A stretch of DNA of 64,000 bases from Podarcis gaigeae (taxonomy: Eukaryota), in the NCBI GenBank assembly GCA_964106915.2, contig OZ066914.1. One strand, given 5' to 3'. The notes below the pieces were generated by a model. It saw nothing but the letters and a program-made list of their open reading frames with translations, did not search any database and was not told where the DNA came from. The stretch's first letter is position 1. Each line of letters begins with the position of its first letter. A program made the translations under genes and the position numbers. This document shows positions 186-23,550 of the stretch, piece by piece.

Positions 186-446
186 CTATCTTGATAACAT
201 CCATGCTGAAGGACATCAACGCAGAAGAGAAAGATACAATAACCTTTGAAGTGACTGTTAATTATGAAGGCATTACGTACAAATGGTTGAAGAATGGCGT
301 GGAAATAAAATCAACGGACCGGTGCCAGATTAGAACTAAGAAACTTACACATTCACTTTCGATAAGAAATGTGCATTTTGGAGATGCTGCGGAATACAGT
401 TTTGTTGCTGGGAAAGCTGCTTCATCTGCAACTTTATATGTGGAAG
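186..446 (+). CDS. TTN: Titin exon 38 (proximal I-band Ig)
   Basis: accag|CT...GAAG|gtatta; 261 nt; ILITSMLKDINAEEKDTITFEVTVNYEG...ATLYVE is near-identical to recalled human titin. Confidence 0.95.
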
Positions 447-1271
447 GTATTAAGTTTTCTTCCATCTGTTTTAGCTCTTTAGCACTAAATTGAAGCAAAC
501 ATCAATCCAGAGCAGTGTGGATGAGCCGTTACAGTAACAGATCCACTACTGAACTGGTTTGGATAATCCCAAACCGACATGTGACCTAGCCTTTTTGGAA
601 TGCATGTAGCCCCTTCACTCCTTCCTTTGCATGAGCTGCAGTTATACCAGGAAGCCTCTAATTAAGCAGATTTTCTTTTTTTGAAATGATATTAAAAAAA
701 CTTCACGCCATAGTTTAATACCCTGGTTTGTTCCAAAGGTGGTAGTCATAGCTTCCCAGTTTGGACAAACCAGAAAACTGTGGTTAATTGAAAACTTACT
801 GGCTTATTTTCTTGCACCAGAAATAGGAGTGAAGGAGCTATATGCACATGCTAAAGACTCGTTCATATCTCAGCTTATTAATAAATTAACTTTTTGCCTA
901 TGCTCACCAAGCTATGACTGTCCAAATGTGGCTGAAATTGCTAATGATACGACAGGCTGAACTGGTTAAGTGACTTAAGAAATGCTTAAAGAAACCCATT
1001 TTCTTTAATCTTACTGCTATGCCTTAATTGTTTTCTTTTGTTGAAATTACTCTACCTGCTTCTTATTTTGTTTCTTGTTATTTTAATTTCAATACAAAAT
1101 GTTTTGCCGTGCTTTGTAAATGTGCATATTAACAAACAGGGAATTGTTGTTAGCTAATTATTGTTGCGCTCTGATGTGGAAAGGAGGAGTATAAATTAAG
1201 CAATTATTAATCGTCTGGGACTATAAAGTGGCTCATAATGCCAATATCTCTCATGGTTTGTTTTTTTCTAG

Positions 1272-1413
1272 CTCGCCACATTGAGTTTAGAAAGCACATC
1301 AAAGACATAAAAGTTGTGGAGAAGAAAAAAGCTGTTTTTGAATGTGAGATCTCAGAACCTGACATTTCTGTTCAGTGGATGAAAGATGGACAGGAGCTTC
1401 AGCTTGAAGACAG
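1272..1413 (+). CDS. TTN: Titin exon 39
   Basis: ttctag|CT...CAG|gtaatt; 142 nt; ARHIEFRKHIKDIKVVEKKKAVFECEISEPDISVQWMKDG. Confidence 0.95.
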
Positions 1414-1713
1414 GTAATTTGTGTTGTTGTTTATTTTTAAAAAATGAATATAAAGAAAAGTTGAAGTTTTGACCTGGGAGCTGCTGCTGCTTGTGACAAG
1501 CATTCAGGACATGGATCGTGAATTCAAATGTTACTTAGCAACATTGGCTAGTCATTGTACTAGCCATATCAACTTGCCATATGACAACTTTCAGACACAA
1601 CAGAACTTATTGGGCTAGAGAGAAGGCTTTGAGAGAAGATACCATATACATATAGTTATTGATATGTTAAGAGACCACACTTTCTAAGTTTAATTTCCTT
1701 GCATTATTTTTAG

Positions 1714-1879
1714 GATAAAAGTTCAGAGAGAACGGTTCGTTCATCGCCTCCTGATTACTACCACAAAGATGTCTGATTCCGGGAAGTACACGGTAGTGGC
1801 AGGAGGAAATATGTCCAGCGCTAATTTGGTAGTGGAAGGGCGTGATGTTCGCATCAGGAGCCTTCAAAAAACCGTCCAG
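1714..1879 (+). CDS. TTN: Titin exon 40
   Basis: tttag|G...CAG|gtatag; 166 nt; IKVQRERFVHRLLITTTKMSDSGKYTVVAGGNMSSANLVVEGRDVRIRSLQKTVQ; phases fit both neighbours. Confidence 0.95.
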
Positions 1880-2893
1880 GTATAGTACTTCCTATTGTTT
1901 TGATGACCAATATAGCCGACCTGCCCCTGATCACTGAAACGTCAGTTTCTCAAATAGATTTTCCAAACTCGGTGCCAAAAATCTGTGGAGAAACTTCGGT
2001 TCCACCAAACAATAATGTTCATGTGTTAATTATAAAAAAGAAACAAACAACCATACTAACTTGTAGAAGCATTTTGCTCAAAGATCCTCCCAGATCTCAG
2101 TTAGAAAAAATACTGAATTCCCCATTGTGAAAATGTAAGCAAAATCAGATGCCAAAGAAGGCACACAGCCATGTGGAGGAGCATTGCTCTCATGGACTGA
2201 GCGCTTCTTAAAGTGAACAATGATCTTTCTCTTCAGCAGTTGGAACAAAACTCTGTGCACAGGGCCCTCTCACACGTATTCATGTCCCCTTAGATATTTT
2301 TTAACACACCCCAAAATACAAAATATAAAACTATATTTCCCTCCTAACTTAATTTAAATCAGTTAATGTCAACGCATACAAGAAAACTTTATAGTTCCCT
2401 TTAAGAATTCTTCAACCCCCCGGCAAAATTATGAGAACCATCTTATTTTCCCAAGTGCACACTGCGTTGATCTGATATTATTCCTTCACTGGTGTCTAGA
2501 GAAGTGAAGACTGTAGTATAGGGACAACTGATCATTTTGTTGGCAGATCTCACCCAGATCTGGAGTTGCTTATACATTGTGATGTGCTTCCCCACTTATT
2601 TTGAAAAGTTATTCATCTTGTAAACTATGAGAAAAAAGATCAGCTGCAAAAATAGTCTGTTAAGGTTCAAGGGCTTCTGCTTGGTGATTTCAAGGGGCTT
2701 AGGAATGTTGAGTGCCAATTGAAAAATTGGAAAAAAGGAAGGCACAAACAAACAAATGAACAAATGAAAAGCGGTGTGTGTGGAATTGACCTACTTGAGC
2801 TCCCAAGGACTTGCAGTAGCTTGGGAATAGCATGGCAGGCCAGCACCCCACAAGGTAAAAAAAATCCCCCTGAACAAGGCTGCAAGACTGCTA

Positions 2894-3248
2894 AAAAAGG
2901 ACCCCTGACCGTCAGGTCCAGTCGTGACCGACTCTGGCGTTGCGCACTCATCTCGCTCTATAGGCCGAGGGAGCCGGCGTTTGTCCGCAGACAGCTTCCG
3001 GGTCATGTGGCCAGCATGACTAAGCCGCTTCTGGTGAACCAGAGCAGCGCATGGAAACACTGTTTACCTTCCTGCTGGAGCGGTACCTATTTATCTACTT
3101 GCACTTTGATGTGCTTTCGAACTGCTAGGTTGGCAGGAGCAGGGACCGAGCAATGGAAGCTCACCCCATCGCGGGGATTTGAACCGCTGACCTTCTGATC
3201 GGCAAGTCCTAGGCTCTGTGGTTTAACCCACAGCGCCACCCGTGTCCC
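2894..3248 (-). mobile_element. Full-length Sauria SINE (lacertid type)
   Basis: Reverse strand reads GGGACACGGGTGGCGCTGTGGGTTAAACCACAGAGCCTAGGACTTGCCGATCAGAAGGTCAGCGGTTCAAATCCCCGCG...; 13-bp TSD TGCAAGACTGCTA at 2881-2893 and 3249-3261; family recognised from memory. Confidence 0.9.
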
Positions 3249-3523
3249 TGCAAGACTGCTACTACAGTCCTAAACAAGGGTACACTTATTAGGGTTGGGG
3301 GGTGTAACACAACCCATTCTTGTGGGTCCCTATTTTTGTTCATACAAATGGGAAATGATAGGTGATATATGTAACTACATCTATACAGTCCTTTTTTTAA
3401 AAAAAAATCACTGGTGTTTTGTTTGCACATTTTTGTTTGTATCACAGATTTATTTTGTATTGTTTGATGAATAGAATAGACTAACAGAAATGGGGGAAAT
3501 AATTAGTGTCTGCTTATTGACAG

Positions 3524-3755
3524 GTCATTGAGAAACAGCGAGCCGTGGTAGAGTTTGAGGTCAATGAAGACGACGTTGAGACTCGCTGGTATAAGGATGG
3601 AATTGAGATCAACTTCCACATTGAGGAGAGATATCACTATGTGGTGGAAAGAAAAGTCCATCGGATGACAATCACTGAAACTAGATATACAGATGCTGGA
3701 GAATACACCATCTTAGCTGGAAGAAACAGGAGTTCCATCACTCTCCATGTGAACG
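3524..3755 (+). CDS. TTN: Titin exon 41
   Basis: gacag|GTC...AACG|gtgtgt; 232 nt; VIEKQRAVVEFEVNEDDVETRWYKDG. Confidence 0.95.
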
Positions 3756-4039
3756 GTGTGTATACAGATTTATCTTGCTTTTTATTGGAATACTAATTAA
3801 TATAAGAAGCTACATTAGCAGTCTCCACAAACACACTTGCCAATGCTGAAGTTCAGCATGACATTGCAGTCAATGACAAGCAAAAGAAATGGCTGACTTT
3901 CAAGGCCATCCAAGATTTGTGTTCTGCATTATATCGCTTTCTCTTTTTTTGCGCTTCTTATTTTCTTTTGAACTATTTCAAGCTGCACTTTTCAGCAACA
4001 GTACGCAAGTAGTTAAGGTTCAGTCCTGTGTTGTCAAAT

Positions 4040-4151
4040 GCAGGGAACGTCTGGCCCTCCATATGCTGTTGGACTCTCATCAGCCGAACCAGCACGGCCA
4101 ATTAGGGATGATAGCCATTGTAGTCTAGCCACATCTGATTTCCTACCCCTG
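4040..4151. mobile_element. Degenerate hAT-type MITE
   Basis: cagggaac..ggccctccatatgctgttggactc..gtagtc..acatctg..cccctg resembles the copies at 38804-39191; ends approximate. Confidence 0.45.
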
Positions 4152-4888
4152 CTATACACACTTTTAGGGCAGTAAATCCAATTGGACTCTGAGCAGACAT
4201 CCATAGGCTTGCACTGCTTGTGATTAGCTATTTGTTAAGCTGTATCCTTCTGCATGTACCTGGTCATCTTGATCAGACAAGTTTATTTTTCTTAGAGGTG
4301 TCTACACTTCAGCCCTAATCTGAGATATAAAAATGATTATTTTCTAGTATTCACCATTACTTTATAGCACCGCACCGCCCCCATTTATCATTGGAACAAC
4401 CCCAGATTAAGGCTAAACTGCAAGTTAGGCCTGACTAGCAACACTCAGGGGAGAAAAGTGTAATGAAGTCTTTCAAGGACCATATTATTTCATGTTTGTG
4501 GTGGGACATTATGGGTTTGAATGCTCCAGCCACTGAAAACCATTGTGTCAGGGAAAGCTTTCTAGCCTAGTCGCCGTCCTGATGTGCTAGTTTCCTACAG
4601 CCAAGAAGTTGTTGATTTAATATGACAGAGGTTTCAAACATGCTATCTCCCATCACAGTACCTGTGGCTAATTTGTTCATGTGCAAATCAACCCTTTGCC
4701 TGTTGCCCAACATCTCTTTGTTGAGCTACAGCTAGCAACTGGTCCTCTCTCTTCCAGATCTAGTTACCTTGCATTACGTGTCACATAAATGCTGAAAAAC
4801 CTGCATGCAATCATAGGAAGGAAGGAATGGAATCTATCTTTCTAGAAATTAGTTGCATTATTATGTATATATATATTTTTAATTATAG

Positions 4889-5173
4889 CTCCAGAGCCAC
4901 CGCAGATTGAGAAGGAGCTTCAGCCAGCCACTGTGGAGTCTGGAAAGCCAGCCCGCTTCTGTGCTGTTGTGTCAGGAAAGCCGCAGCCCAAGATCTCATG
5001 GTACAAAGATGAACAGCCTCTTTCTTCAGGCTTTAAGGTCAAATTTCTTCATGATGCCCAAGAATACACTCTGTTGCTGATTGAGACTTTCCCAGAAGAC
5101 GCTGCCGTCTACACGATTGAAGCGAAGAATGACTATGGAGTCGCTACTTCTTCTGCGTCCCTTTCTGTGGAAG
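4889..5173 (+). CDS. TTN: Titin exon 42 (GC donor)
   Basis: ttatag|CT...GAAG|gcaagc; 285 nt; [30 protein letters not shown]...ASLSVE. Confidence 0.93.
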
Positions 5174-5282
5174 GCAAGCTCTCCCAGCAATCTCGAGCAT
5201 TTTTGAAACTGGCATTGTCAATATTTTGCACTGTGTGCTCTTCCATGGAGGCTAATAATCACTCTTTGATCTTTTTCCTTAG

Positions 5283-5408
5283 TCCCAGAAGTTGTTTCTC
5301 CTGATGTAGAAGTGCCAATTTACCCACCTACTATTATCGCACCACTCCGCGATGCTATTACTTCTGAGGGACAGTCTGCTTGCTTTCAGTGCAGAGTTAC
5401 AGGGACAG
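5283..5408 (+). CDS. TTN: Titin exon 43
   Basis: ccttag|TC...ACAG|gttagt; 126 nt; [42 protein letters not shown]. Confidence 0.95.
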
Positions 5409-6607
5409 GTTAGTTTAACCAAGTCATAAAACACTTTTGTACTCCTTGTTCGACCCGGTGCACTTAGTAGGTTAAAAAACAGCAACAAGCAAACAAACCA
5501 GTTACTGAAGCCAGGCTTCCCTATTGCCATGTAGATTCAGTTGTGTGTATACAATAACCTAACTTGTCTTATACTGACCGAGAGGTCCCATTACCAGGGA
5601 CTCCATTTTGCAGTGCTAAACATTAAAATGGTAGGCACAGTTGTAATCATCCTTACACTTTTAATTCAAAGTGGCATTTTGCCACACTCTCCTAGGTTTC
5701 AAATGAGCCTGAAAAATGAACAAAGCCTTGGATGTCAGCTTCTGACACAACTTTGCCGTGGAAAGAATGGATCTTCACTGAGCATCAATCCTCACTTTAC
5801 TTTTTGCACTTGGGTACATGTACTTGAGTAGAAATTCATGTGCATTTAAGTATGTAGGTTGAATTAGGAAGAAGATAATTAGGATTGTGTCCTTTAATCA
5901 TTTAAAAAAATCCCAAAAGGAATTCTCAGTAAAGGATCATGTGCTTTTCCTAGCAGACACATGCAATATTTTTTTTTAAAAGGAGAGACATACACTTCAT
6001 ATGTCTCTCATTTTTCTGGGAATATATATATAACAAGAAAGGCAATACATGACTAGGAAAGTTGCTTGAAAAGGAATGTGGAAGAAAGATTAGAACCTAT
6101 CCAAAATATTACTTGCAATCCATTCTGACCTCTCAACTTCATAATACTTCAGTGTCAGATGTGAATTTTGCACTTAGTTACACATACCTGAGTACCAAAA
6201 GTAAAGTGAGAATCAGCCCATGCTTCAGACATTTTATGGCTAAAAGTATTTATGTTACTCCTGCCCTGTCCACCATATTTCATGGAATCCAAGGATCAGC
6301 TAAACCAGCTCTGAAACCGAACCATTGATAACCAGTACCCCCAGTAAACCATGTATCTAACTGCAGAATGATCTCTTCATATATGCAAAAGACTTGGGCA
6401 AATTAAAATCACGTATGCTCCAATATCTTGCTGGTGTGAGATCCCTAATATGTACACAGAACTCCTTATAAAAGAGCTACTATAGGAACAAAGAACTATG
6501 AATGGAGGGGACAGTTCATCTGAGAGTCCATAGACCTCTTGATCCACAGTCCTGGGTCACCAGCAGTTCTGATCAGTTTGACTGTTTGCCTATAGTTACA
6601 GATATAT

Positions 6608-6644
6608 GGAGGGAGGGAGGGAGGGAGGGAGGGAGGGAGGGAGG

Positions 6645-6681
<37 letters not shown>

Positions 6682-6694
6682 AGGGAGAGAGAGA
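6608..6694. repeat. (GGGA)n/(GA)n polypurine microsatellite
   Basis: Directly visible. Confidence 0.95.
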
Positions 6695-7189
6695 ATTTGA
6701 GCAGTCTAGATATCTGGGTAAATGCCCCCCTAGCCGCCAAAACACTGAGCTTTATATAATTCTAAGAGAAGAATGAAGTGCCACGTCATAATTTTAAAAC
6801 CATCAGTATTGCCACAATAGTTCAACTTGCATATAAAAACACTCATTATAGTTCTTTTAATTCCCCCAGTGAACTTACTGAAACTCACACAATACTTCCC
6901 TTTTGCATATTCTAAAATTTGGATTAGATAGTTATACTTAAAGATTATACTTATACTTATAGATTTTAATATGACGCACATAAAAATCCAAATGGACAAT
7001 TCGCTTTTAAATTAGATAAATACAGACATGTACTCGAAATGAGATATTATCCCTAGGAAAACAATTCGTGAACGTATGATCCATTTGCACGATGGGTGTA
7101 TCGGTGATGAACTGAGGATCCCAAAAAGGGCTCAAAAAGTTCTCTTCCCCCACCTGCCCTGCTCCAGCCTGCACATGCACAAAATGACA

Positions 7190-7310
7190 GGGATGGGGTA
7201 CCTGTGGCCTTTTGGACTCCAACTCCCATCAGCCCCAGCCAACATGGCCTGTGGTCAGGGATGGTGAGAAGTGGAACCCAACAACATCTGGAGGGGCACC
7301 GTTTCCCTCA
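7190..7310. mobile_element. hAT-type MITE (ggactacaactcccatc family)
   Basis: gggatggggtacctgtggcc..ggactccaactcccatcagccccagcc..caacatctggagggg; similar to copies at 29095 and 38804; ends approximate. Confidence 0.55.
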
Positions 7311-8589
7311 TTCTTGCTTTGAGAGTTACACATACGCCAAGCAGAAACGAGTTGCACTGTGCAGGGGGCAGAAAGAGGGAAGGTGGCTTGGGGATGAAGA
7401 AGGCATGCACAGACTACTCATTTCCCCCAGACATAACAACTATGCTGCCTCTCCATGTGCCCATGTTGATATGTAGGTGGGATATACGGGTAAAGAGAGG
7501 AACTTCCAGGCATTGGTTGGCGCTACACTCATGGTGCATATGGATCGTGTCCCTAACTACAAAAAGAAAATTCTGATAGGACTTTTAAAAACATGTCATC
7601 ATAAAAAGCATGTAGGAGTTTACACTGAAAATATTGGCAAATTTTGAGCTGTGCAAAAGCATGTCAGAATGATTTATGTATATATACATATATATGCTCA
7701 TATGGGTATATATATCATTTTGATGTGCATGTTGAAAGCTACAGCATTTCTATATGTATATATTTGTGGAACCAGAGCATGGGGAATTGTTCTTGGGAAC
7801 GCCCGCTCTCTTTGTATTGTTCATGAATGTTTCTGCATATGACTCAGTACAGCATGAAATTATCCTTAGAATAGTTCTTTGTCATGGCCCAGGTCAAACC
7901 TGCTCATGTGCTCCTCCACTGCCCCCAAATATCCAAAGCTGCCAGTTTCCAGAATAGTATTGTTCATTTTTCATGCTCACTGAAATTCTGGATGAAAAAG
8001 AAGGAGAACAAAAGTTTGAGGTTCACTAGGTGTACACGGAGGATAGAACTACACGTGATGCTCAACATGGGACTGCCACCAACAGTGACCTGTGTCTTCC
8101 CCTGCCTTTCCCTGAAATATTTTAATCAGACTTCCTATGCCATTTCCCTGGCTCCACATCATTGGCTGTTGCTTGCAGGGGTAAGGGAACACCAGGTGGG
8201 GAGAAGTGGATTTCCCAAAATCAGTGAGAATATTGCTCAAAATTGGCATCAATCCTGGTACCACTTCTCCACCAGCTGTTGAAGGCGGCAGGGTGGGTGG
8301 CACAGGGGGCAGCGGGAAACAACATGGATTGGTCTAACTGTGCATTCTTAGGCTTCACTTTTCAGAAATCAGTCCTGTTGAATTCACTAGGACTTGTTTC
8401 CAGAATACTGTGTATTGCAGCCTAAACATTACAGTGGAGGGGGAAGAACTCAGTGCAGTGTTGCCATATCAAGTATCTCTTTAGTTCTGATCTCCCAACT
8501 TGTTCACCAGTTTGCTCCCCAAGAGTGAAACTAGAAACCTTACATGTATATCTCTCTCTTTTTTATTTTGTTTCTTTTCACTTGAGCAG

Positions 8590-8778
8590 ACCTCAAAGTA
8601 GCTTGGTATAGCAAAGACAAAGAGATCAAGCCATCCCGCTTCTTTAGGATGACTCAGTTTGAAGACACTTTCCAGCTTGAGATTGCAGAAGCATACCCAG
8701 AGGATGAAGGAATTTACACCTTTGTCGCAGGCAATTCTGTTGGCCAGGTGTCAAGTATGGCTGCACTGAAGCTGGAAG
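8590..8778 (+). CDS. TTN: Titin exon 44
   Basis: gagcag|AC...GAAG|gtacag; 189 nt; DLKVAWYSKDKEIKPSRFFRMTQFEDTFQLEIAEAYPEDEG. Confidence 0.95.
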
Positions 8779-10191
8779 GTACAGAGTGCTGTCTAAATAG
8801 ACACTGTGTAAATTTGCATGTGTTTTAACATTAATATATCTTTATATATATCTTTAAAACTATGTGTAATTGTCTGTCATGTCAGTGTCTTATAACTCAA
8901 ATAACCAACCCCATTGTCTGATGTCGATAGCGCCCATCTGGTCTCCGCAGTATAAATTCTGCAGAGTATCATTTCACGTTGTTCCAGTGTTCCATAGTTT
9001 TCATCTTTCCATTCTGTTTCCAATGAGTATCCAGCACGCACCAAAGATAAACGAATAAATAAACCCTCTCTGACATAACCAGATTCCCAGAATTTATTTG
9101 TCATGCCAAATCACATTTCTGTTGAAAGGAAGTGAAGGCGTGTATCTAAAGAACTGTGCGATATAACTCAATACAGACAATGGGGGTTTAGGTTTAGGTT
9201 TGTCAAACAGGAGCACTCCCAGTCCCATGTTGTGTGGCAAACCAATTCCGAGACTGAGGTCAGAAGGATACCTATTGGCTGGCAATGCTAAAAAGCAGTG
9301 TCCCAGAGTCTCCTCTTCCTCCTTTTTTGTATCTTGCAATACAAAAATGTGTGATGTGCTGATTGTTATTTCCGCCTGTTTACAAGTGGGAAGCTCATCA
9401 CAAAATGAGGCCACGTCACATGGTTTTTACATTAATACATGCTAAAAGGAAACAAAGAGAAGATGTAGAGCTGGGATGGCTGCAGCCACCATGCATGTGC
9501 CATAATATCTAGTTCTAGTTTTGCGAGGCATGAGGGTGCTTAAAAAGCAAATTGTGATATGGCATGTGGATGATGAGCGAATCTGTTTATTTTCTGTCCA
9601 TGTCACTTTCACACATGACTCCGTCCCATTTCCACATTAATTAAACGACATTAAATAATTAGGCATCGCTAATGTTGGCGAAATTGCATTTATGTATGAA
9701 AAAGAAGAGCACCTTACACTGAAATTAGAAATGAATGCCCCGTTGAAAAGAAATGTCTAACCTCCTTACCATTCCAACACCTGCTGAAACACAAGGGGGA
9801 AGCCCAGAACCTGCAATACAATATTGATTTTGTTGCTGTTTTTCAGGGTAATATATCTAGAATGATTTGAAATGCCTGTAGCAGGCATTAAAATCATTGG
9901 GATTTAATTGACTTGCATCATGCCAATTCAAATGTGAATATTTGTCAGAGGAAACAAATATTCAGATACGTGACACGAAGAGCATTTATACATTTAAACT
10001 CAGCTGGTTTTCAAATGTTTTGCTTTCCACTCTGCTTGTACCCAGAGCCTAAACATTGTCACTTAGGAAAAGGAAGAGTGTGATGCTATAAGAATGTGTT
10101 TGTAAATAAAGAGAAAGGGCATGTAGGGCGGCTAGAGAAAATTGACTGGTGTGCAGGGTAAGAAATTAAAAGTTGACATGCTTCTTTTCAG

Positions 10192-10563
10192 GCTTTAAGG
10201 TTGAAGAAGTTACCTCACATTCCCAAAGGCATGTTTCTTCATCTTTCTCCATTAAGAAGGACCCCGTTGCCCAAAGGCCCAACTTTATCCAGCCCATCTC
10301 AAGCTGCAGCGTATGCAGGGGGGAAACAGTCAGATTCCAGGCCAGGGTTTCCGCCATGCCGAAACCAGAAATCCTCTGGTTTCATAATCAACAGCTAATG
10401 TTGCCAACCAAAGGCGTAGTTTTCCATTTTGATGAGTCGACAGGCACAGCCACATTGATAATAGTAGATGCTTTCTCAGAAAATGCCGGGCAGTACTCTT
10501 GCAAAGCCAGAAATAGTGCTGGAGATGCAACTTGCATGGCTACACTTACAGTGACTGCTGAAG
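10192..10563 (+). CDS. TTN: Titin Novex-1 exon (45), one Ig
   Basis: tttcag|GC...GAAG|gtaaag; 372 nt, phase 1-1; GETVRFQARVSAMPKPEILWFHNQQLMLPTKGVVFHFDESTG matches recalled human Novex-1. Confidence 0.9.
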
Positions 10564-11239
10564 GTAAAGCCCCGCTTTTGTTCCTAGGGAATTCTGTTTG
10601 TTGCATAAACCACACTTTTTTTCTACACTGTGACTAATGACCTTCTCTTCTTCCTCGTTTCACACTTTTAAATTTTATTTTTAGAACTAGCAGTGCCGTC
10701 ACTAATGTCAGTAGTCCTAGCGGTAACCAAATAAACCACTCTCGTTTCCTGTACTTTCAAAGTGTCGTGTCATTTAGAACTTGCATCCTGGTCTATTGCT
10801 CAGATAATACACCTGTTTTTTGGTAGACTAAACACATGCACACACTTCAAGGCAGTGAGTTGTTGGCAGTTGGTAGCATTCTCCGACGTTTGCTCTACTC
10901 GGTTTTTAAAGGGAAAGAAGGGATATTGTTAGGGTATCAAAAAAAAAAAAAAAACCTTCAAATTGCCATGGACAACTGCAGTGGAAAGAAGAGTCAAATA
11001 ATTACCACATATTACCAGCATGAGCATATTTCATTTTTTCCCATCCATCATTGTGGCTGTTCTTTTCTGTAAAATATTTGCTGCCTCCTGAGGGCACCTT
11101 TAATGAATGCAGCTGGCATGCAAGGCTTTCAAACGAAGACATTTCATTCTTATCATCTATGGCTTAGCGTTTTGCTTTTAACGTGGCCCACTGCAGTGCA
11201 TTAGATATTAATCATATGTTTTGTTACTTGATTACACAG

Positions 11240-11818
11240 TGCAAGCCTTAGATAGGCTAAGTTCTGGGAAAGATGTAAAAGAGTCTATCCAGGCAAAATC
11301 AGAAGTGCATATTGCTTCCCCCTTTGCAAAGAAGGAAACTCAAGTGTATGTAAAAGAAATTAAGTCCAAGCAGGAGGCGTCACGGGAAATGGTTGTGCAG
11401 GCCTTTGAACACCTTTCTGGAACTTCTACTGTGAAAGCTGAGATTGGGAAGGAAGGAGAAAGCTTCAGTGCCACAGCCATTACTCAGAAGTCAGAAAGCG
11501 CCACGGTATCTGCAACCTCCATTCAAGTGCTGAGAGAGGCGCCCCCAAAGATTCTTCTGAAACTTCATGATCTCACTGTGAGATGCGGCGATACTGCTCA
11601 GTTTATGTGCGCTTTGGAAAGCGAAAACTTCTCGGAGGTTTTGTGGTCCCACGAGGGAGAAACGTTACAGGAATCTGAACGAATAAGGCTGTCACAAAAT
11701 GGAAGCGTTCTCTTCCTCACTATAAGCAATGTCCAGCTTTTAGATCAAGGACTGTACAGCTGTACTGTTCGTAACGACTATGGAGAAGTAACAACAACTG
11801 CTATACTAACCGTAGAAG
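11240..11818 (+). CDS. TTN: Titin Novex-2 exon (46), linker plus Ig
   Basis: acacag|TG...GAAG|gtggtt; 579 nt, phase 1-1; VQALDRLSSGKDVKES and CGDTAQF...DQGLYSC match recalled human Novex-2. Confidence 0.9.
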
Positions 11819-13014
11819 GTGGTTATCTGATTTTTAACATTATGTGATGTTACTTCATTTCATCCTCATCATCACTGCCTATAGCTCCTGTGCTAGTATT
11901 TAATTTAGAATTACAGTTTTGAGTTCCATTTCCCCCAACCCTCTACATTTCGGGCTCTATTCATAAAGTAACCACATGCACAGGTACTCTGTGTGATTTG
12001 CTAGTAAAGTAGGAACCATACCTTTCCCTGGCAAGTTACAGAGGTATCGGGTTCATCTCCAAAAGCAAGGACTAGTCAATTTGCAGTGAAATACTGAAGC
12101 AATTTGGAAGTTTCCTATAGGATCAAAGAGAAGTACAAGAAGTTGTTTACAATTATTTCTCCTTTACTGGCTGTTAATTTTTGTGAAAGCTTTTTTTAAA
12201 AAACAACAACAGCTATGTAGTCTAACTTTTAATTTTGGCTATTCTAGTTTACAAAGGGTTTTATGCAGATATTGACTGCCATTAACAGAACCATTCTCTG
12301 AATGCCCTTTTCCACCCATACCAGTTTTCTTTTAAAATTGGAATTTTGCATCTTTTTTTCATTCTTTTATTGACCACAACAATTTGTTACGGTTAAGGCA
12401 AAGAAACTCCCACATGTCATGTGCCTTGCTTTTCCTTGTCCAACACCAGATGATGAAGGTGCCACAAATGTTTTTACCTATAGTCCTCTCTTGTGTTTAA
12501 GCAATGAAGACTAAGAATTGACTTTTGGTTTTCTTCTCATGGCATGGAAATAGCTGCACGATTAGCACACAGAAGAGTAGGAACAACAACTTGAACCCCA
12601 AACAGTGCCAAATATCCTGCTTTTACAAACTGGTGGATTTCCTGACTTTTCTACACATCACTGAAAAGCATTGCAGCTGCAGCTGCCTTGTAGGCTATGC
12701 AGAAGAAGCCTTGACTAAAACTGAAGATGTCCTTGTAAAAATTACTGTGGGCCAATCCTATTTCCTCTGATGTCAGTGACGCAAATCCTGTGGATCTAAT
12801 TGCACCTTCTATTTAACCTGGCATGAATAGAGCCCTTAAATGTGGAACAGGATAGTATAAAAGACTGAAAATTCAATTGTTTTTTGCACTAACACGCTGA
12901 ACATTCCTTTTACCATACTAATGGCTTTTATATACATATATAATTGCTGAGTATAGATTTTTTTTTTTTTTGCTGCAAAACATCTAATCTTATCCTAACT
13001 TTATTCTTGCCTAG

Positions 13015-13536
13015 CTAAAGAAGCACAAGCCAGAACAGTAACAAAAATTACCCTTGAATCAGATACTAAAAGCATTAAAACAAGCAAAGAGTCTCAGATT
13101 AAAACAGCCTATGAATATAAACAAGAGTCTTCCACGGAAACGACGAGCGTGACAATATCTACAGCTCAAAAAGCACAAGAAGCTGAGAAACTGAGGATCA
13201 GAGACTACTACCCTGATGTTGTGCCGTGCGAAGACATCGCCGAAACTGGTGCCACAGTACCAGTCTTCCTTGAAACTCTGCCCCCAGAAAGCTTTGTCAA
13301 AGAAGGAGATAATGTCTCGCTGTTCTGTGTAATCAAGGGGTTCCCTACACCTTGTGTCATCTGGCTGTATAACCAGCTAATAGTTGAGGATTCTGCATTG
13401 TGCTCTTTGAGGCACGATGGCCCACTGTGCAGTTTAAACTTACTGAAAGTTAAGGAGAATCAGAGGGGTATATACAAGTGCAGAATAGTTAATTCTGCGG
13501 GACAAGCCGAGTGCAGCACACATCTGAGAGTGACAG
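13015..13536 (+). CDS. TTN: Additional Novex-like titin exon (about 82-aa linker plus I-set Ig), no known human counterpart
   Basis: cctaac branch point; ttattcttgcctag|CT...ACAG|gttggc; 522 nt, phase 1-1, stop-free; PVFLETLPPESFVKEGDNVSLFCVIKGFPTPCVIW...GIYKCRIVNSAGQAECSTHLRVT. Confidence 0.8.
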
Positions 13537-13810
13537 GTTGGCAACTGCATGTTCCTTCCATATACTCCTCTTGCGTACCGTCGTTGAAACCTGTTCAATC
13601 CACAGTCCGTGATATAATGAAGCGGCTGTGGATTGTTGAATATTTTCCTCATGGTGTTAAAGGCATGTTAAAGGCATGTTGAATTAGAAAAAGAAAGAGA
13701 GGGAGAGGGTGGGGAGAGGGAAAGGCTCCATTAAAATGCTGTGGGGGAAAATCCCCAATACTTTAGCATCCTCCCACTATTTGTTTTCAACTTATCAGGC
13801 ACTTCCTGGC

Positions 13811-13850
13811 ATGTATGTGTATGTATGTATGTATGTATGTATGTATGTGT
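13811..13850. repeat. (TATG)n microsatellite
   Basis: Directly visible, about 100 nt upstream of exon 47. Confidence 0.9.
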
Positions 13851-13947
13851 GGTTTTTTCCTCCCCCTATCAATGCATCATTTTTATTTTCTTCTCTTGCA
13901 ACATTCAACTCGCTTTCCATTAAATCACACTTTTATTTTTATTACAG

Positions 13948-14004
13948 CCCTGGAAAGAGTTCTGCAGGAGAAGATAGAACAACAGATTGAAATGGAAGTG
14001 AAAG
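13948..14004 (+). CDS. TTN: Titin exon 47
   Basis: ttacag|CC...AAAG|gtacag; 57 nt; ALERVLQEKIEQQIEMEVK resembles recalled human APESILHERIEQEIEMEMK. Confidence 0.93.
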
Positions 14005-15139
14005 GTACAGTCGCACACAAACGTTTATATGGAAAGGAAGGTTTAGCATAAAAAAAACCCCAGTAACCCCTTTGAAAAGCTGATACGTATGACCAAGAAA
14101 GCAAAACATATTCTGAAGCATATCTGAATATGCCGCATGTTTTGTTTTAATATGCTCAGGATAACCTGCATTATTACAAAAAGGATACAAGTTTTAAAGT
14201 CCATTTAAAACTTTTCATTTTCACAGATTTGCCCGTCTTTACTTTCACATCGTGCTATGCAGCTGGTTGCAAAAGCTTTTCTTTCGTATACCTTCTTGTA
14301 ATGCATGGGACAATTTTAGACTGAATTGCTTCGGATGGTTTCAGAACACATTAGTCCTCTAACATGAATGAGTTGGTCAAAAACCATGGGCTGGCATCTG
14401 ATTAAGATGCAACACTTTGCAAGATGGGAAAGGGGCCTGTTTCCATTGTTGCCCTCCCATTTCATGAACATGATATTAATTCTCCTTTATGGAAATTCTT
14501 ACACTGGCTTGCAGATAGCATAGTTGGGCCATGTTGCTTGCTTTCTTTCCTTTTTTCTTTTTTTGCATAACATTGTGAAGTTAGCAGCTGTATTAGTTCG
14601 AATAAACGCCTTCTCATTTTGTTTTAGCAAATTACTTACAGTTGATTTTTTTTTCATATCTTTGAAAAATATCTTTTCTATTGTTTGACCATTTTAACCC
14701 ACAATCAAAGGGATCAGAAAGGGCGTTTATTCTACTGTCTGCAAGTCAGGTAAGATTCCCCTCCCCTTCTTTGCAAAGAAGAAATGCAAAAAAAAAAAAA
14801 TTACAAAAAAATAAAAAGCTTTTCAGGCAGTAAAACATGCACCCACAGGAACATGTCATTTTGAGATTCATTTTGCTTGTTGATGAAGAAATTTCCGCAG
14901 TTGGAAGAAAGAACCGACAGCGAACGATTTTCGTGTCAGAATCTTTAAAACAGAGCAAGGCGTTGCGTTTATTCGAACAAATATGGTGAGTGAATTTTTT
15001 TTTAATGGATTTGTGATGAATCTGTTGCATGCTCATTATTTAATTTCATTTATAGCTATTTCATTTCTTTTCATTTTTTTTCCCAACTGTGTGATTGAAA
15101 GGACGGAGTACGCTGTAATGTAATGGTATTCTTTTGCAG

Positions 15140-18100
15140 AACTGTTCTTCGGTGAAGAGCCAGAATATGCAGAAAACCCAGCTGGCAAACAGGCTGCTTC
15201 TGCTGATTCCGTAGATCTTCCGCAACATGGATCTCTCCCGGATCTGAAGGGCACAAGTGGAATGTCATTTATGCATTCCTGGCCTGAGAAACAGAAACCT
15301 TCTTTCACACAAAAGTTAAAGTATCGGTCTGTTATGGCTGGAGAGCCAGTTGTTTTCCAGTGCAAATTGAGTGCCCTTCCTTTGCCCCAAATAACATGGT
15401 ACCATAACAACAGGCAAATCCCCCAAAGTCTGCGAAGGCGAATAAAGAGTGAGAGCTGCATGGATATGCACAGCTCCAGTCTAGAGGTAAAAGAAGTTCA
15501 GGAAAGGGACTCAGGGAGTTACAAGGTTTTTGCTATTAACAGTGAGGGTTCAGCTGAGTCCACTGCTTCATTGTTGGTAGCACATGGTGACAAACAAAAT
15601 GCCAAATACCTAGAGTTTTTGAGACAGTCAGAGAGTACTTGTGAACGTATAGAGCATCTGGTGCAGAAAAGGAGTGGCGATAGGCTCAAAGTTGATCTGC
15701 GGTGTATTGGTTCTCCGTTTGATAAGAAGCAGGAAACCGAGAAAGCGCTGAGAGCTTTTTCTCCTACCAAAGGGATGGTGAGGACCATAAGCTTTGAAAG
15801 CCTCTCGTCCTTAAGAAAAGGATTTGTATACGATAAGGATTGGGTAAGAAACAGGCGTGCAGGTAGGTGGTGTAGTGAGGGAGAGGCTTTGCTTGACGAG
15901 GAAACAAAAGTAAAGTTGCAGCGACTTCGCGAGGCAAAAAAAGCCATGCTGGAAAAGAAAAAAGTGCTTCTATCACAGGGATCGACAGAGGAACACCTTC
16001 CCTCTGCGAAAATTGTAGGAATTGGGAATAAAAGAGGCCCGTTGGCTCGTTCAATCTGTGCAGCATCTCATGTAGAGACAAAGGGACTTGCTTTCCAAAC
16101 TATAGAGCAGATTAATGAAAAGGCCATGTTACCGACAGTGTCAGGCACTAAAGAAGTTACGGTAGGAAGTTCTAGCAGGCAGCTTGAGAAAACATCAGAA
16201 AAATTTCAGGTTAGAATGGAACGGATCCTGGGCCTTCCTGGGCCTCCTCAGATTCTCCAGGATTTTCCTGATAAAAGCAATAGGGGAGGAATGTTCCGGA
16301 GACAGGAGGTAGTAGCCTCTAAAGGGAACGTGAAGCCACAAGTTCCAGAAACAGATCCAAAGGCAATCGGGAACACAAGATGGATGCACCATACTTATAC
16401 CCATGGAAAATCAGAAGAAGCAAGAATGGATACTCAAGACTTCAAGGCGACAAAAACCATTAAGAAAAACCCCTCTCCCCTGGTATATGTACTTTTGACT
16501 GATGATGTCAGTGAGAGAGAGAAGGATGATGTCAGTGTGAGAGAGAAAGATGATGTCAGTGAGAGAGGGAAACCTGACATGATGATGTCTGATACAATCA
16601 CATTGAACATTAATGAACCTGTGCCTGTTTTTGAGATCAGGGAAATGAGCAAAACTGTAGAAACGGCAATGTCAGTAAACAAATGCTCCCTTGAAACCGA
16701 AGAGTCTGTGTTGACTGAGGTCACTGAAACAGAAACGGAGATAACAGAACCACCTGACAAATTGGTGATGCCTCTTCCGAAATATCTGGAGCCATGCCCC
16801 CCTTTCTTTGTTCATGAAATTGAATCACAAGAAGTAAGCGAAGGAGAGAGCTGTATTTTTAATTGTGATTTCCAAGGCCATCCACAGGTCACTGTCACTT
16901 GGTATAACAATGACAAGCCGCTGTCACGTAACCAAGAATGTAACATCAGAACCACAGAAAATAGTTCTACACTGACATTCTCCACCATTGTCCGTGATCA
17001 GGAAGGCTCCATTACTTGTGTGATATTTAACCAGCATGGGACTGCTACAACTTCAGGAACGCTAAAATTGAAAGGAAAGGAAAAGCCTGAATTTGAACCA
17101 TTCAGTATATGTAAAGTTGAGCTTTCACCAGACTATGCAGAAGAGGAAGAGGAACTCAGTTTGGCATTTGAGTATTCAAAAAAAGATGAACCTGATTTAA
17201 GTATGGATGGCAGAGCCACTCTCCTGCCTCCACAGATTAACCTGCCCAGACCTTGCATTTCTGATCCAGATCTGCTTTCACTTCCTGTGGAAATAAAAAT
17301 AACTGCTCCAACCCCAACTCCAGAACAAGATGAAGAATTTAAAGAATTAACTCAGTTTGTTGAGTTTGTGCCTGAAGAACCCCCTGAAGAACAAACTTCT
17401 GCAGGACTAAAGCATAAGTTTAAATTTTCATTTGATGTGGCTCATGAACCCCCCAAAATCTTAAAAGAAATTCAACAACATGTTAGATGTAGAGAAGGGG
17501 ATTCGGTGGTACTTGAATGCTTAATATCTGCAGAACCACTGCCAATTGTAACATGGCTGCAGAATGATGGGATTTTAATCCCCACTGAAAAGTTTTACTT
17601 TGAGGAGGGAGATGGCGTTTATAGGTTGCACGTTTGCAAGGTTTCCATATCTGATGCTGGCACGTACAAATGTGTTGCCGAAAACAAAGCTGGCATAGTC
17701 GAAACTGTTTGTTATCTTTCAGTTGATCCCACCTTGGAAATATTTTCGGATGAAACTGAGCTCAAAGCTGTCGAAAGCCAAGTCAGAGGAACTCAGGACC
17801 AGATTGCAAAAGAACATTTGGGGAGTTATTTTGAATCCTCAGTAGGACTTACGGAAAGTAGTTTTAGCGATAAAGCATATTCTGTAAGCCAGCAGTTCCA
17901 CAGTGTTAGTAAACTGGATTTCGGAGGGGAAGAAACAGGTAGACCAGCCCAGGAAATGGAATCCCAGCTGCCAAATTATCTAAATGATGTAATGAAGTCT
18001 CTACTTGCTGATGAAAGTGAACACCCACATTTCCAGATCTGGGAGCAAAAAGAAGTATATAAAGAGATGGAGTCAAATGCAAAAGAAGAACAAAGGGTAG

Positions 18101-21100
18101 CCAGTATTTCAGAAATTTTAGCAGACACTCCACTTGTTGAGGAATTTAGAGATACAGCTGCTGAGCAAGCCAAAGTAGAAAGCACATATAAACACGCAGC
18201 CATGGAAATATCATCAAGCTGTCAATTTGAAATGGTTGTAGAGAGTCATAAGGAAAGAGAGAGGTCAGTTACAGGAGAAGACATTTCTGTAAGTCATGAT
18301 GTAAAAGATGAAGGGAAAGCTGTAAGAGACATATTTGAGAAGATGCAGAAGATTTCTAAAGATCAGGAATTCACACTAGCATATCTGGAACCAGAATCGG
18401 AGAGTCTTCAGTATGGACCAACTCAAGGTATATCACACAAGGAAATACCTTCAAGTGAGGTAATCACAGACATACCATTTAAGGAAGTTAAAGAACAAAT
18501 CTGCACTTTTGAGCAGGAGTTAAGTGCAAAAGAATCTATGGATCATAGGTTTTCCACACTGCTGCAAGAAGACAGTGATATCCATGAGAAGGATCAATGT
18601 TTTACTGATATATTAAGCAAGAATTCTCAGGATCAGTCAGCCATAGAAGAGAGAAGTATGTTACATCTGCAAAATATAAACAATGAACTCCAAAGTGCAC
18701 CTAAGGAAGAACAACTTGACAGTGAGGTTGTAAACAAAGAAAATCTGCAGGAGGCAGTAGCCAATGAACACCAAGAACTGTTCAGAGTAGAAAAAGAGCA
18801 AGCATTCAGAAGTTCTATCTCTGACAAAGAGAAAGACACTTTGATCCATGAGGAAAAGTTCACTAGCTTTGGTGAGGGGAAAGAGAAGGAAATCCATTGT
18901 GGTGAAGAATTGGTAGGAAAAGCAGATGTAAGTGTGCCTGAATTTGTATTTGATTTAAAACAAATGCTTACTATTGAAGACAACGTAGATAAGAATGCTC
19001 AAGAACAAACTGAAACTCAGGAACTCATAGGCCCAAGCTCAATTGATGGCAAACTTGATATCTCACTTGATGGAATGCCGGTTCATGCAGATACAGAAAC
19101 TGCTGATGAACAACAAAACAGACTTAAGTCAGAGGAAGTGTATGCCAAAGAAAAATGTTTGGTTTCTGAAATAATACAAGCTAATACAAACAAAATCACA
19201 GAATCAGCACAAATCGGCATATCAGCTCTAGAACAAAGATTGGATTCTAGTCAAGGTATTTCTAAAGAGGGTGAACTTGTAAAGGAAGCAAATTATGCCC
19301 AAGAAGATGCATTATGCCTAGAGAAGGAAGAATTTGGTTTACATCCAGCTTCCTTAGGCACAGAAACTGTTGTTGAGGAACGAGAGGAAATCGTTATCAA
19401 AGAACTTTCAGATTTTGAAAGAACAGACCTAGGCAAGATAATAGAAAGTGCAGAAGTAGACACATCAGCTGAGAGTTATAGCCAGGATATCAACAAAGAG
19501 AAGGAACTGGGAGAAGGAATATTTGATTTAAAACAACTTTCTCTGCATGTAGAAAATGATAGTCAAAACCAGGACAATGTCCTTGTGAAAGCTCTGCATT
19601 CCGGTTCTGAAGAAATGAAACTAGATGTCAACAAAACCCCAGAGATTGTACAATCTCCCACTTTGTTTCTAGAGCAAGGAAGAGCTTCTCAACAAGAGCT
19701 TTCCCAAGATACTGAACCAGTAAAGACAGAATATAGTTTCAAGGAAGCTATCTTATCCTTTGAAGAAGAATTTCCCTCCAAACAATCTAATTATAACATA
19801 GAAATTGTTGTTCAAAAGGAAGTTCGCATTGAGGAAAAACAGACTCATGAAAAGGATCAAGATTCTGTTTTTACTGTTCCAGACATAGAAATTATTGGGG
19901 GAAAATATGTTAAAACTGAATATTCAGTTGCTGAAAGCCTGGAAACTGACGTGGCTGAACATGCACACAAAAAATCGGATTTAGAGGTTTCTAAAGTAAA
20001 TGAAACTATAAAGGAAAAAAGTGCTGCACTGCAACAATCATTACCCCCTAAAAATGGCATTTTTGACTTAAAGCAAGCTTACTCAGATATAGAAAAAAAT
20101 AGCCACCTACCAGAGACAGAAGAAACATACTTAAAAAACCTCTATTCCGCTTCTGAAGGAGTTCAGGCTGATACACAGAGTACCATGGAAAATGCACCTC
20201 AAATAATGCATTCTTGCCAAAAAGATTCCTTCTCTTTGAAAACCATGATGGAAGAAGATAATGTTCAGGAACGTATATCCCCAGAAAACAAAGACATTGA
20301 TTTAAAATTAGCTTTTCTGAATCTAGAAAGTGTTGATCAACAGCAAAAAGAGAAGTTGCCACAGGGGCAAATACCTCTCAAATTCCTGTATTCTGCTTCA
20401 GAGGAAATGGAAGCCTTTCAAGGGCAGCAGTTGAAATCCACTGAAAGCAATGTCCTCTACAAGAGCAGCAACCACAAAGAATGCACCCTGTCCCCAGGGA
20501 AAGAACTACAAACACAAGAGCAAATGTTTGATCTGAAAGCACATGCTGCATCTTTATCACAAGGCTTTTCATTGAAGGAGGCTGAAACATTACCAGAGAA
20601 AGAAGTGGGTTCCTTTAATCTGAGGTCTGCTTTTGAGACCGTGGGTACAGAGACAGAGAGTTTCATAAAACAGCTACAGAAGGCAAGCGTACCAGAGGAA
20701 GGAGTTTCTCTAAGTGAGGAACTTCGTCAGAGCTATAAGGCGCGGCTGGAGGGAGATAATTCCCTAGAACAAAAATTACAAGCGGAAGCAGAGCTGACAG
20801 TGACACAAATACTGAAGAAGGCCTTAGAAACGATTAGCCTTTCTACTGAACAGGAGCCTGCTACAAATCGGCATTGCGATCAGGAGGGGAAAATTTCTGA
20901 GGAGGAAGTGCTTAGGATGCCAGATGAAGCCTTTCTGTGGGGGCAGCCAGAACCCATCCCTCTCAGTCAGTATTTTCAAAACCAAGTGAAAGAAACTGGT
21001 GTCCTCGAAGCGGATAGTTTCATATCTGATTTGAAGAAAGCTGCACATGGAAAGAAGCCTCAAAGCGTTCATGAAACAGGGGGAGAAAAGACACGTGCTA

Positions 21101-23550
21101 CTGAGCAAACCATTATCAAAGCGAGGAGTTCTTCCACTGAGGGGGCTACTGATATCAAGAAGCCTTTTGATAGTCAAATAATGCCTGACAAACAACCATC
21201 ATCACACAGCTCAGCCAAGGAACCCTCGTTGACCCAGTTCCTTCTTTCCTTAAAAGATGAATCACTTATAAGCCAGGGAGGTGTGACAGGAGAATGTGAA
21301 ACTACTGAATTCATGAATCCTCCTCTAGGAAATCTAACTGAAGGGGCTACCAAAGAAAGTACTCTTCATGCTCAAGAACCTCCTCCTCCTCATGAAGGAG
21401 CAGATTTCTCTCTTACAAAATATTTGCTTGCTGCCAGAGAACAGGAGATCCCAGTTGTCAGAGAGAGCTCATCCAGGACTCTGACCAGGGAGGGATCTAT
21501 CACATCCTTGGAGGTTGAAGATGTTACATTTAGCACCGTTTATGATTATTACAAGCAACAGCAAGAACTGACCCGCCCTTTTTCTCCTGAGTCAGAAATG
21601 TCTATTGATATTGACAGCATGAGCGGAGACGAAATGGGAGAGGCTGAGGGATTCTACACACCACCGTCGTCAGTGGATAATTTTGAATCTCCCATGTCTT
21701 TTGAGTCTTATCACACACCAATTGGCAACCCGGAACGATATTCTACACCTTCAGAGGAACGATACTCTACACCATCAGAGGAGCGATATTCTACACCGTC
21801 AGAGGAGCGATATTCTACACCATCAGAGGAGCGATATTCTACACCATCAGAGGAGCGATATTCTACACCATCTGCAGAGTCGAACAGAGCTTCAATGAGG
21901 TCTCCTGCAAATCTAGTGAGGGGAAGTACCCCACCAGAACATTACCAAACACCCCGTGGCTCTCGTTTGCAACACAGGAGCTCTTCTCTCGAAGAGCTAC
22001 GTGCTGAAATGTTCGGTACACCTTGTGAAGCATTGGAACCAAAGGGAAACGAAATTCCCCCTGCATTTATTAAGCCATTGACTAAAAGAAAAATCTATGA
22101 GAACACCACATTGCGTTTTATTGCCGAGGTCATAGGGATTCCCATACCTGATGTGAAATGGTATAGAAATAAGTCATTGCTTGAGCAAGATGAAAGGGTC
22201 AAAATACAAAAAGAAGGTGATGTTTGTATCTTAGAAATCCGCAACATTCAAAAAACAGATGGAGGGGAATATATGTGCCATGCAATAAATATCATAGGCG
22301 AATCCAAGAATATCGCACAAGTACAAGTGTTACCCCATGATGGAAGAGCTTTGGCTCTTCCTCCTCCAGTAACTCATCAACATGTTATAGAGTTTGATAT
22401 AGAACAAGGGTCAGCGTCACGAACACCTTCGCCTCAGGAAATTCTCCTGGAAGTAGAGCTGGATGAAACTGAGATTAAGGAATGTGAGAAGCAAGTGAAA
22501 ATAGCCACTATTCCTGAACTCACTTCTGATAATCAAAGTATGATTGTGTCTCTTGATGTTCTCCCTTTATCTCTGGTGGAACACACAACGGCTTCTTTTG
22601 GGAAAGAGAACAAAGATGTTACAATTGACTTTGAAGTCACCGAGATGCCTCCACGCTTTACCACCCCTGTCTTTGACATAGAGGTTCCAGAAAAATCTGA
22701 GGCATTGTTTCATTGTACAGTCGCGGGCTGTCCTACCCCAGTAGTGCAGTGGTTTAAGGCAAATCAGTGCATTTCTTCAGATGCTTTGAAGTACACTGTT
22801 AGAAGTGAGAATGGAAGTCATAGTCTTAAAATTCAGAATGTACAGCATTCTGATAGTGGCATGTATTTGTGTAAGGCTGTTAATGCTGTTGGAGAAGCTA
22901 TATGCAGGTGCTTGTTAGCTGTAACCGAGGGCCAAGGGGCTCTTGCAGTGACCAATGATGGAAGTCAGGCAGATTTAAGTTTGGATAGCACTAGTGGTAG
23001 GCCTCAAAAGATTGATTTGCTTGTTGATAATACTATCCAAAATGGCAACCAGACGGAAATAGAGCTGGAGTTTGAGTTTGAAGGTGACACTGATGATTCT
23101 CAGAAAGCTGTTAAATTGGTAGCTGTTACAGAACAGGAGCAGGAAGAGGAAGGAGAAGCATGTGTAAGTATTAACTTTGATGTATTTGCTGAACCATCCA
23201 AAGAAGAGCAGATTGAATTTAAAGGTGAGAGCACAGACAGCTGCAGCTTTGAATTTCAAGTTACAGAAGCACCTCCAAAGTTTATGAAACATATTTCTGA
23301 TTGTGCTTCTTTCAAGGGTACCTCTGCAAGTTTCCAGTGTTTAGTAGTTGGTTCTCCAAAACCGGCAATAAGCTGGTTTAAAAATGGGGCGTTGATTCAT
23401 GAAGAGAGATACTGTGTGGAGGAAAGTCAGGAAGGTTGTCACAGTCTGACTATAAGAAGCTTAGTCCAAACTGATGAAGGCGAGTATAAGTGTGTAGCAA
23501 CCAACAAAGCAGGGACTGCCTATAGCAGTGCTTCGTTAACAATCTGCTGA
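15140..23550 (+). CDS. TTN: Titin Novex-3 terminal exon (48), coding part, about 2803 aa, six Ig-like domains
   Basis: tttgcag|AA CTG TTC; open to TGA at 23548-23550; KPSFTQKL, INSEGSAESTASLLV and LDEETKVKLQRLREA match recalled human Novex-3; Ig-like domains start near 15295, 16798, 17449, 22057, 22648 and 23272. Confidence 0.93.
16501..16572 (+). repeat. Coding 24-nt tandem repeat x3 (DDVSEREK)
   Basis: gatgatgtcagtgagagagagaag-like unit three times. Confidence 0.9.
21733..21876 (+). repeat. Coding 24-nt tandem repeat x6 (ERYSTPSE)
   Basis: gagcgatattctacaccatcagag-like unit six times. Confidence 0.97.

Follow-up and report, generated by a model that had tools for sequence, protein, structure and literature searches.

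Titin often gains and loses Ig exons, and the exon that we describe here, which we call exon X, is not a new kind of system. Its closest described counterparts lie in the same exon 44-47 cluster: Novex-1 (exon 45, Ig I16) and Novex-2 (exon 46, Ig I17), each of which, like exon X, joins a unique linker to one I-set Ig domain in a phase 1-1 exon ahead of exon 47. The Ig domains of Novex-1 and Novex-2 nevertheless share less than about 30% identity with that of exon X and fall into separate clades, and only exon X has the full triad of cysteines at the B, F and G strands, whereas Novex-1 has F and G and Novex-2 has B and F. Novex-3, a neighbouring isoform-specific exon, resembles exon X in combining Ig domains with unique sequence, but it is terminal, carries a stop and extends over several kilobases, while exon X, an internal cassette, measures 522 nt and has a working donor. 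The stop and poly(A) arrangement of the Novex-3 type does not apply to exon X, in which the tail past the donor is variable and frame-shifted and the donor is used. Another extra exon of the Novex region, exon 48', also came from cross-species comparison (PMC5852582); it is a frame-shifting exon of 85 or 100 nt that follows exon 47 and is conserved in human, whereas exon X precedes exon 47 and is in frame. Titin domains I67 and I69 (PMC5766482) share cysteines at the B, F and G strands with the exon X Ig, which differs in its three additional cysteines, in the Q or H that replaces the D of DxGxY, and in the long linker encoded on the same exon.

Exons 44-48 of eight species, including chicken, anole and frog, have been compared with human (PMC5852582). 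That comparison, anchored on the human gene, missed exon X, which lies within its chicken 'intron 46' (1898 nt). For elephant shark titin, only Novex-I, -II and -III are listed (PMC12241362). No fourth Novex exon or Novex-4 was described in the literature that we searched, chicken and zebrafish titin papers lying outside that search. An earlier reading of the locus, made from its sequence only, had called the exon undescribed. This is correct for the searchable literature, in which exon X is apparently unnamed, but the exon is already present, whole or in part, in mislabelled automatic gene models: XP_046777693 (chicken 'MYLK-like'), XP_037998766 (wagtail 'myopalladin-like'), KAF7245011 (Varanus), CAI9556857 (Staurois), A0A8C4SB43 (reedfish) and XP_074076053 (bilby). 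All six are fragments with wrong or empty names, and none is labelled as a titin exon. Chains of Novex exons are also entered as nested genes at L001 10001-12148 and in P0168, P0169, P0183, P0197, P0206, P0236, P0239 and P0260, under the RefSeq and GenBank names MYLK-like, SPEG-like, myopalladin-like, peroxidasin-like and VSIG10-like.

Structure of exon X and its neighbours

The window, by which we mean the whole 64,000-nt stretch of Podarcis gaigeae DNA that was analysed, is part of the lizard titin gene, and its Novex-2 shares 92% identity with a fragment from Podarcis muralis. The sizes of exons 44, 45 and 47 agree with the lizard column of Table 1 in PMC5852582, and contigs and reads confirm the joints 8778-10192, 8778-13948 and 10563-13948, as well as that from exon 47 to Novex-3. 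Exon X sits between Novex-2 and exon 47. As the sequence-only reading had it, Novex-1 and Novex-2 can both be identified separately beside it, with read-confirmed joints for Novex-1. The splice signals that it described are all in the sequence: a CCTAAC at 12994-12999, a pyrimidine tract and a CTAG acceptor ending at 13014, and, after a stop-free segment of 522 nt, the donor AG/GTTGGC at 13536/13537. The phase matches not only Novex-1 and Novex-2 but also exon 47.

Features of the Novex region of the window (positions are those of the window)
Feature	Position	Strand	Details and basis
Exon 44, 189 nt	8590..8778	+	Splice joints; size as in PMC5852582 Table 1
Novex-1 (exon 45), 372 nt, phase 1-1	10192..10563	+	Spliced on both sides in run X1
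Novex-2 (exon 46), 579 nt, phase 1-1	11240..11818	+	Open frame, splice sites
Two CTAAY elements, branch-point candidates	12984-12988, 12995-12999	+	Conserved upstream positions across species
Pyrimidine tract and AG acceptor of exon X	13000..13014	+	Conserved in 8 species
Exon X, optional titin cassette	13015..13536	+	522 nt, phase 1-1, adds 174 codons
S/T/E/K-rich linker, residues 1-80	13017..13256	+	Predicted unstructured
YYPDVVP motif, linker residues 64-70	13206..13226	+	Conserved; candidate docking site
I-set Ig domain of exon X	13257..13532	+	Pfam, cysteine alignment
Triad cysteines of exon X	C104 = CysB 13326; C155 = CysF 13479; C166 = CysG 13512	+	
Exon X 5' splice site GTTGGC, then TGCATG	13537..13551	+	Same position in 8/8 species with DNA
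Exon 47, 57 nt, phase 1-1	13948..14004	+	Splice joints in contigs and reads
Novex-3 terminal exon (exon 48)	15140..23550	+	Frame open to 23547; run X23 joins exon 47 to 15140

Exon X holds 173 whole codons and zero stops. Of 20,000 shuffled versions of the exon, 1 kept that frame open, and open runs in the flanking introns reach at most 102-135 codons. Donors starting with GTT form the majority among the 54 Ig-exon donors of the window, and the exon X donor is normal in this respect. Further downstream, a block at 14097-14213, between exon 47 and Novex-3, is 72% identical to chicken and is probably the exon 48' region of PMC5852582. At about 8.4 kb, the Novex-3 exon of the window compares with lengths of 6.5 kb for human and 8.0 kb for anole in Table 1 of PMC5852582; at about 21620-22000 its other frames show an 8-residue periodic pattern, which suggests a 24-nt tandem repeat inside the exon.

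The earlier reading gave the encoded protein an S/T/E/K-rich linker of about 82 aa and an I-set Ig. We place the linker at 80-81 aa, and the Pfam search agrees on the Ig: I-set PF07679 covers residues 87-172 (E 3.5e-17; 62.7 bits vs a cut-off of 23.7). Serine or threonine accounts for 19 of the first 61 linker residues. In the AlphaFold model pLDDT is below 50 for residues 1-76 and averages 52 overall; given this weakness, we took no disulfide geometry from the model, and a Foldseek search with it, to be read as one from a low-confidence model, returned mostly I-set domains of muscle proteins as best matches. Within the linker, YYPDVVP is identical in a teleost-like contig, turtles and birds, and frogs have YFPD(I/V)IP.

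The Ig contains the six cysteines (104, 113, 129, 138, 155 and 166) and the Q in place of the D of DxGxY that the earlier reading had counted; the linker adds C71. In an alignment with the other Ig domains of the window, C104, C155 and C166 fall in the columns of the triad. The CysB/F/G triad was defined in PMC5766482, and in human I69 it makes a buried CysB-CysG bond and isomerises under force. Alignment at the B, F and G positions places the exon X Ig in this cysteine-triad class. CysF and CysG are invariant across the exon X orthologs and CysB is missing in one copy (L005), while Q or H occupies the D position of DxGxY in every ortholog. The L005 copy, which is squamate-like (610-1134), carries C104S, C113F and C129Y, so that three of the six Ig cysteines are replaced in an intact frame.

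Age and constraint

Titin exons were searched individually. A protein search returned close matches from a tortoise, a Pelusios turtle, budgerigar and reedfish, and cluster members added chicken, eagle, wagtail, potoo, penguins and the frog Staurois. Among the broader searches, phmmer against 50% representatives drew overwhelmingly multi-Ig proteins and no more than five true matches, a metagenome scan with exon X found two loci in birds and a single MYLK paralog (L011), and an Atlas search gave nothing beyond generic I-set clusters. Chicken exon X (L001 11505-12023) is 72% identical across 173 aa and that of the Komodo dragon (L012 9150-9674) 83%; the order 44 / Novex-1 / Novex-2 / X / 47 / Novex-3 is common to the window, chicken and the Komodo dragon (Varanus). 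Further copies include two that are squamate-like (85% and 80%) and one that is turtle- or archosaur-like (78%). At greater distance, exon X is 57% identical in a frog-like contig and 46% in a teleost-like contig (58% within the Ig), which also carries exon 44, Novex-2 and an exon-47-like piece; 'frog-like' and 'teleost-like' are labels given by sequence similarity. The reedfish match reaches 67% within the Ig.

In a tree of Ig domains whose outgroup row was the rodent-like MYLK paralog L011 from the metagenome scan, eight exon X copies form one clade (100/99), apart from the domains of Novex-1, Novex-2, Novex-3 and MYLK. The Igs of exon X, Novex-1 and Novex-2 each form their own supported group, exon X has no supported sister, and the deeper branching is unsettled. 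The nearest paralog of the exon X Ig in the window is 32-34% identical. We rejected an origin of exon X as a copy of Novex-1, Novex-2 or another Ig of the window, given this best paralog and the lack of a supported sister. The separate clade, the distant paralogs and the fish-to-bird orthologs together argue that exon X is old in its own right, and its distribution would place it at least as far back as the split between ray-finned and lobe-finned fish. The claim that it is an additional exon, distinct from Novex-1 and Novex-2, is upheld by its own Ig clade and by the presence of both neighbours. One of the two origins that the sequence-only reading had proposed, a sauropsid or squamate gain, is refuted by the frog, reedfish, teleost-like and bilby matches.

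The same tree bears on whether exon X is part of a small gene of its own that lies within titin, of MYLK-like, myopalladin-like or SPEG-like type, as the RefSeq entries in chicken, wagtail, eagle, penguins and bilby would have it. We regard this as extremely unlikely: those models are assembled from Novex-1, Novex-2 and exon X, with names that differ among species for the same sequence; exon X has a splice acceptor at its start and is joined by splicing to titin exon 47; and a true MYLK Ig is just 35% identical and falls outside the exon X clade. The nested MYLK-like genes are an annotation artefact built from Novex exons.

The teleost-like contig (L007 1-3364) shows no Novex-1 between exon 44 and Novex-2. 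In it, 2164 nt separate exon 44 from exon X and 286 nt separate exon X from exon 47. In zebrafish, 'intron 44' is 2350 nt, 'intron 45' is 357 nt, and exon 45 ('Novex-1') is 390 nt (PMC5852582 Table 1). Since the spacing in the contig resembles these introns, the zebrafish 390-nt 'Novex-1' may be exon X.

To measure constraint on the exon, we calculated pairwise Nei-Gojobori dN/dS with bootstrap intervals. The ratio was 0.16-0.39 for the whole exon, with every interval below 1, and 0.10-0.28 for the Ig, while residues 1-61 gave 0.2-0.7 with intervals that often reach 1. For comparison, Novex-1 gave 0.43 and Novex-2 0.21. Squamate pairs fell at 0.30-0.39, not near 1, and again with intervals below 1; the frame was unbroken in all five squamate copies examined, and a near-identical individual or species differed by synonymous changes only (dN 0, dS 0.033). 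The intact frame had been taken as a sign of selection, and the whole-exon ratios confirm this, as do the ortholog lengths of 513, 519, 522 and 525 nt, which differ by whole codons only. The dS to chicken was 0.46 for exon X, 1.06 for Novex-2 and 0.80 for exon 44, and the low value for exon X fits splicing signals within the exon.

Were exon X a relic decaying in squamates as in mammals, one might expect linker intervals that reach 1, substitutions such as C104S and C113F in L005, and runs from the closest relative that show no spliced use, all of which were observed. Such a history is nonetheless very unlikely in view of the five intact squamate frames, squamate ratios comparable to those of Novex-1 and Novex-2, and the near-identical copy that differs at synonymous sites only.

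Use and proposed control of the splice sites

Four runs were aligned to positions 8560-14030, with two repeats skipped (10930-10965 and 13805-13859). Runs X1, X5 and X6 were taken as RNA by guess; no holder of exon X was recorded as RNA. Run X6 comes from a relative about 89% alike, and its contigs behave as RNA in being spliced. One contig of this run joins 13536 to 13948 across a 411-nt GT..AG intron, and at its other end continues 38 nt unspliced into the upstream intron. The depth of the X-47 joint was 4.5 vs 64.5 for the Novex-1-to-47 joint (about 7%), figures to be read with care, since contig depth measures level poorly. The reads and contigs of the four runs yielded no joint into the acceptor at 13015. 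In run X1, from a closer relative in which titin is clearly expressed, exon X occurred in unspliced contigs only, at a depth of 3-5, and none of the ten reads of run X23 fell on exon X. The new titin isoform proposed from the sequence, with junctions on both sides of the exon, is therefore seen in part: the donor joint 13536-13948 is present in one contig from one related species, but the upstream joint into 13015 was not seen.

In automatic models from birds, Varanus and bilby, Novex-1 or Novex-2 is spliced precisely onto the acceptor of exon X, which implies that this site is used, and the frog model P0203 joins exon X to exon 47; the chains are Novex-1 + Novex-2 + X, Novex-1 + X or Novex-2 + X. 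Exons 45 and 46 have been found together in chicken and frog (PMC5852582). Exon X is probably the cassette of a minor isoform and mostly skipped. As a separate observation on its neighbour, the path 44-Novex-1-47 had a depth of 80.8 in run X1 vs 66.3 for 44-47, and was the only one of the two listed in run X6; Novex-1 looks like a major path in the lizard RNA contigs, as far as contig depth, a crude measure, can tell. In human muscle, Novex-1 is reported to be very low (PMC5874998).

A different product would arise if exon X acted mainly as a terminal or intron-retained exon, with read-through of its donor to a nearby stop yielding a very short titin that stops past this Ig, a kind of mini Novex-3. 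Most bird RefSeq models do end in this way, the first 20-30 nt past the donor are strongly conserved, truncated transcripts that retain intron 46 occur in chicken and frog heart (PMC5852582), and unspliced contigs of run X1 span exon X and its flanks. We nevertheless consider this product unlikely. The read-through tail shifts the frame, ranges from about 13 to 51 residues and varies even in close relatives; there is no conserved poly(A) signal, three of seven species having none at all in the X-47 intron; run X6 splices the donor to exon 47; and the splice site together with TGCATG accounts for the conserved bases past the donor. A seemingly conserved C-terminal peptide, 'GWQLHV', was rejected as intron read-through.

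TGCATG, the RBFOX element, lies at 13546-13551, +10 to +15 past the donor, and is found in all eight species with DNA. Among the 54 Ig-exon donors of the window, that of exon X is the only one with TGCATG in the first 30 nt. RBFOX bound downstream of a cassette promotes its inclusion in muscle, and inclusion of exon X is plausibly promoted by RBFOX, to judge by this motif. Upstream of the acceptor, sauropsids carry CTAAY elements at about -31 and -20, and the frog-like and teleost-like contigs have theirs at about -31 to -33; besides being candidate branch points, these could possibly be QKI-type sites as well.

Conserved splicing signals raise the question of whether exon X has been kept as an RNA-level regulator, a set of decoy sites or a binding platform that tunes Novex-1, -2 and -3 and is seldom translated. 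Its very low inclusion would be expected in that case, as would flanks that are 80-82% identical to chicken across 40 nt, the reduced dS, and the bilby sequence described below, which seems to retain the acceptor and the 5' part despite a stop. But the dN/dS of the Ig, core residues that are invariant from fish to birds and the whole-codon length changes all speak for selection on the protein, and make a purely regulatory role quite unlikely.

Probable loss in mammals and proposed role

In the bilby, the RefSeq model XP_074076053 (P0239) runs from Novex-2 into the exact exon X acceptor, continues for 51 linker residues and then ends. Of 48 positions compared with the lizard linker, 30 are identical; the score is 141, and the best of 5,000 shuffles reached 64. 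Because lizard, chicken, frog and L006 have a CAA codon at residue 51, where the model ends, a single nonsense change would explain the ending. We take the bilby linker to be a putative decayed remnant of exon X on the strength of this gene model, in which an assembly error is possible. In the bilby assembly GCA_037893015.1, one chromosome also carries a pair of almost identical Novex-2 models plus a nested fragment of Novex-3 (P0239 and P0253); a local duplication could explain this, as could a problem of annotation or assembly.

An intact mammalian exon X was absent from every protein and metagenome search, and none of the Logan matches to Novex-2 was mammal-like; these searches were limited by length and sampling, so that a blank for mammals means little. 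The published maps of human, pig, mouse and rat show no counterpart of exon X (PMC5852582 Table 1; PMC5874998), in agreement with the earlier statement that human TTN has no third internal Novex exon. From these maps, which carry the placental part, and from the bilby, we infer that exon X was lost across mammals. The other proposed origin, an ancestral exon lost in mammals, thereby gains support from the truncated bilby model and from orthologs that extend from ray-finned fish to birds.

Overall, we consider it probable that exon X is an ancient, rarely included, in-frame titin cassette that fish, amphibians and sauropsids have kept and that decayed on the line to mammals. It would have been present in the common ancestor of bony vertebrates and held since then by selection at the protein level in the first three groups. 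All three internal cassettes being phase 1-1, exon X could be included alone or with Novex-1 or Novex-2. Inclusion would insert 174 residues ahead of exon 47, at the end of the proximal tandem-Ig segment; this site adjoins the positions of I16 and I17 (PMC11033294). At about 0.37 nm per residue, the unstructured spacer of about 80 residues would give the spring roughly 30 nm more contour length, and the CysB/F/G Ig may unfold and refold in a manner dependent on redox state; this mechanical and redox effect is drawn by analogy with other titin domains. RBFOX, bound just past a weak donor, would probably switch inclusion on in some muscle type or stage.

A bolder version, which we think improbable, makes exon X an RBFOX-switched signalling and redox module in which YYPDVVP docks a partner beside the six-cysteine Ig. 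It would then define an unrecognised class of non-mammalian titin isoforms, perhaps including the zebrafish 'Novex-1', and its loss would have been a step towards the shorter, stiffer cardiac titin of mammals.

Titin numbering is anchored on human, and an exon lost in mammals is therefore invisible to the standard map. If exon X is the ancient cassette that we favour, the ancestral Novex cluster had three internal cassettes, the titin models of chicken, frog and fish need correction, and several 'MYLK-like' and 'myopalladin-like' database genes are titin fragments. The mammal line would then offer a datable loss of a spring element, with a marsupial remnant, and non-mammalian muscle would offer a test case for how RBFOX splicing and cysteine redox chemistry tune passive stiffness.
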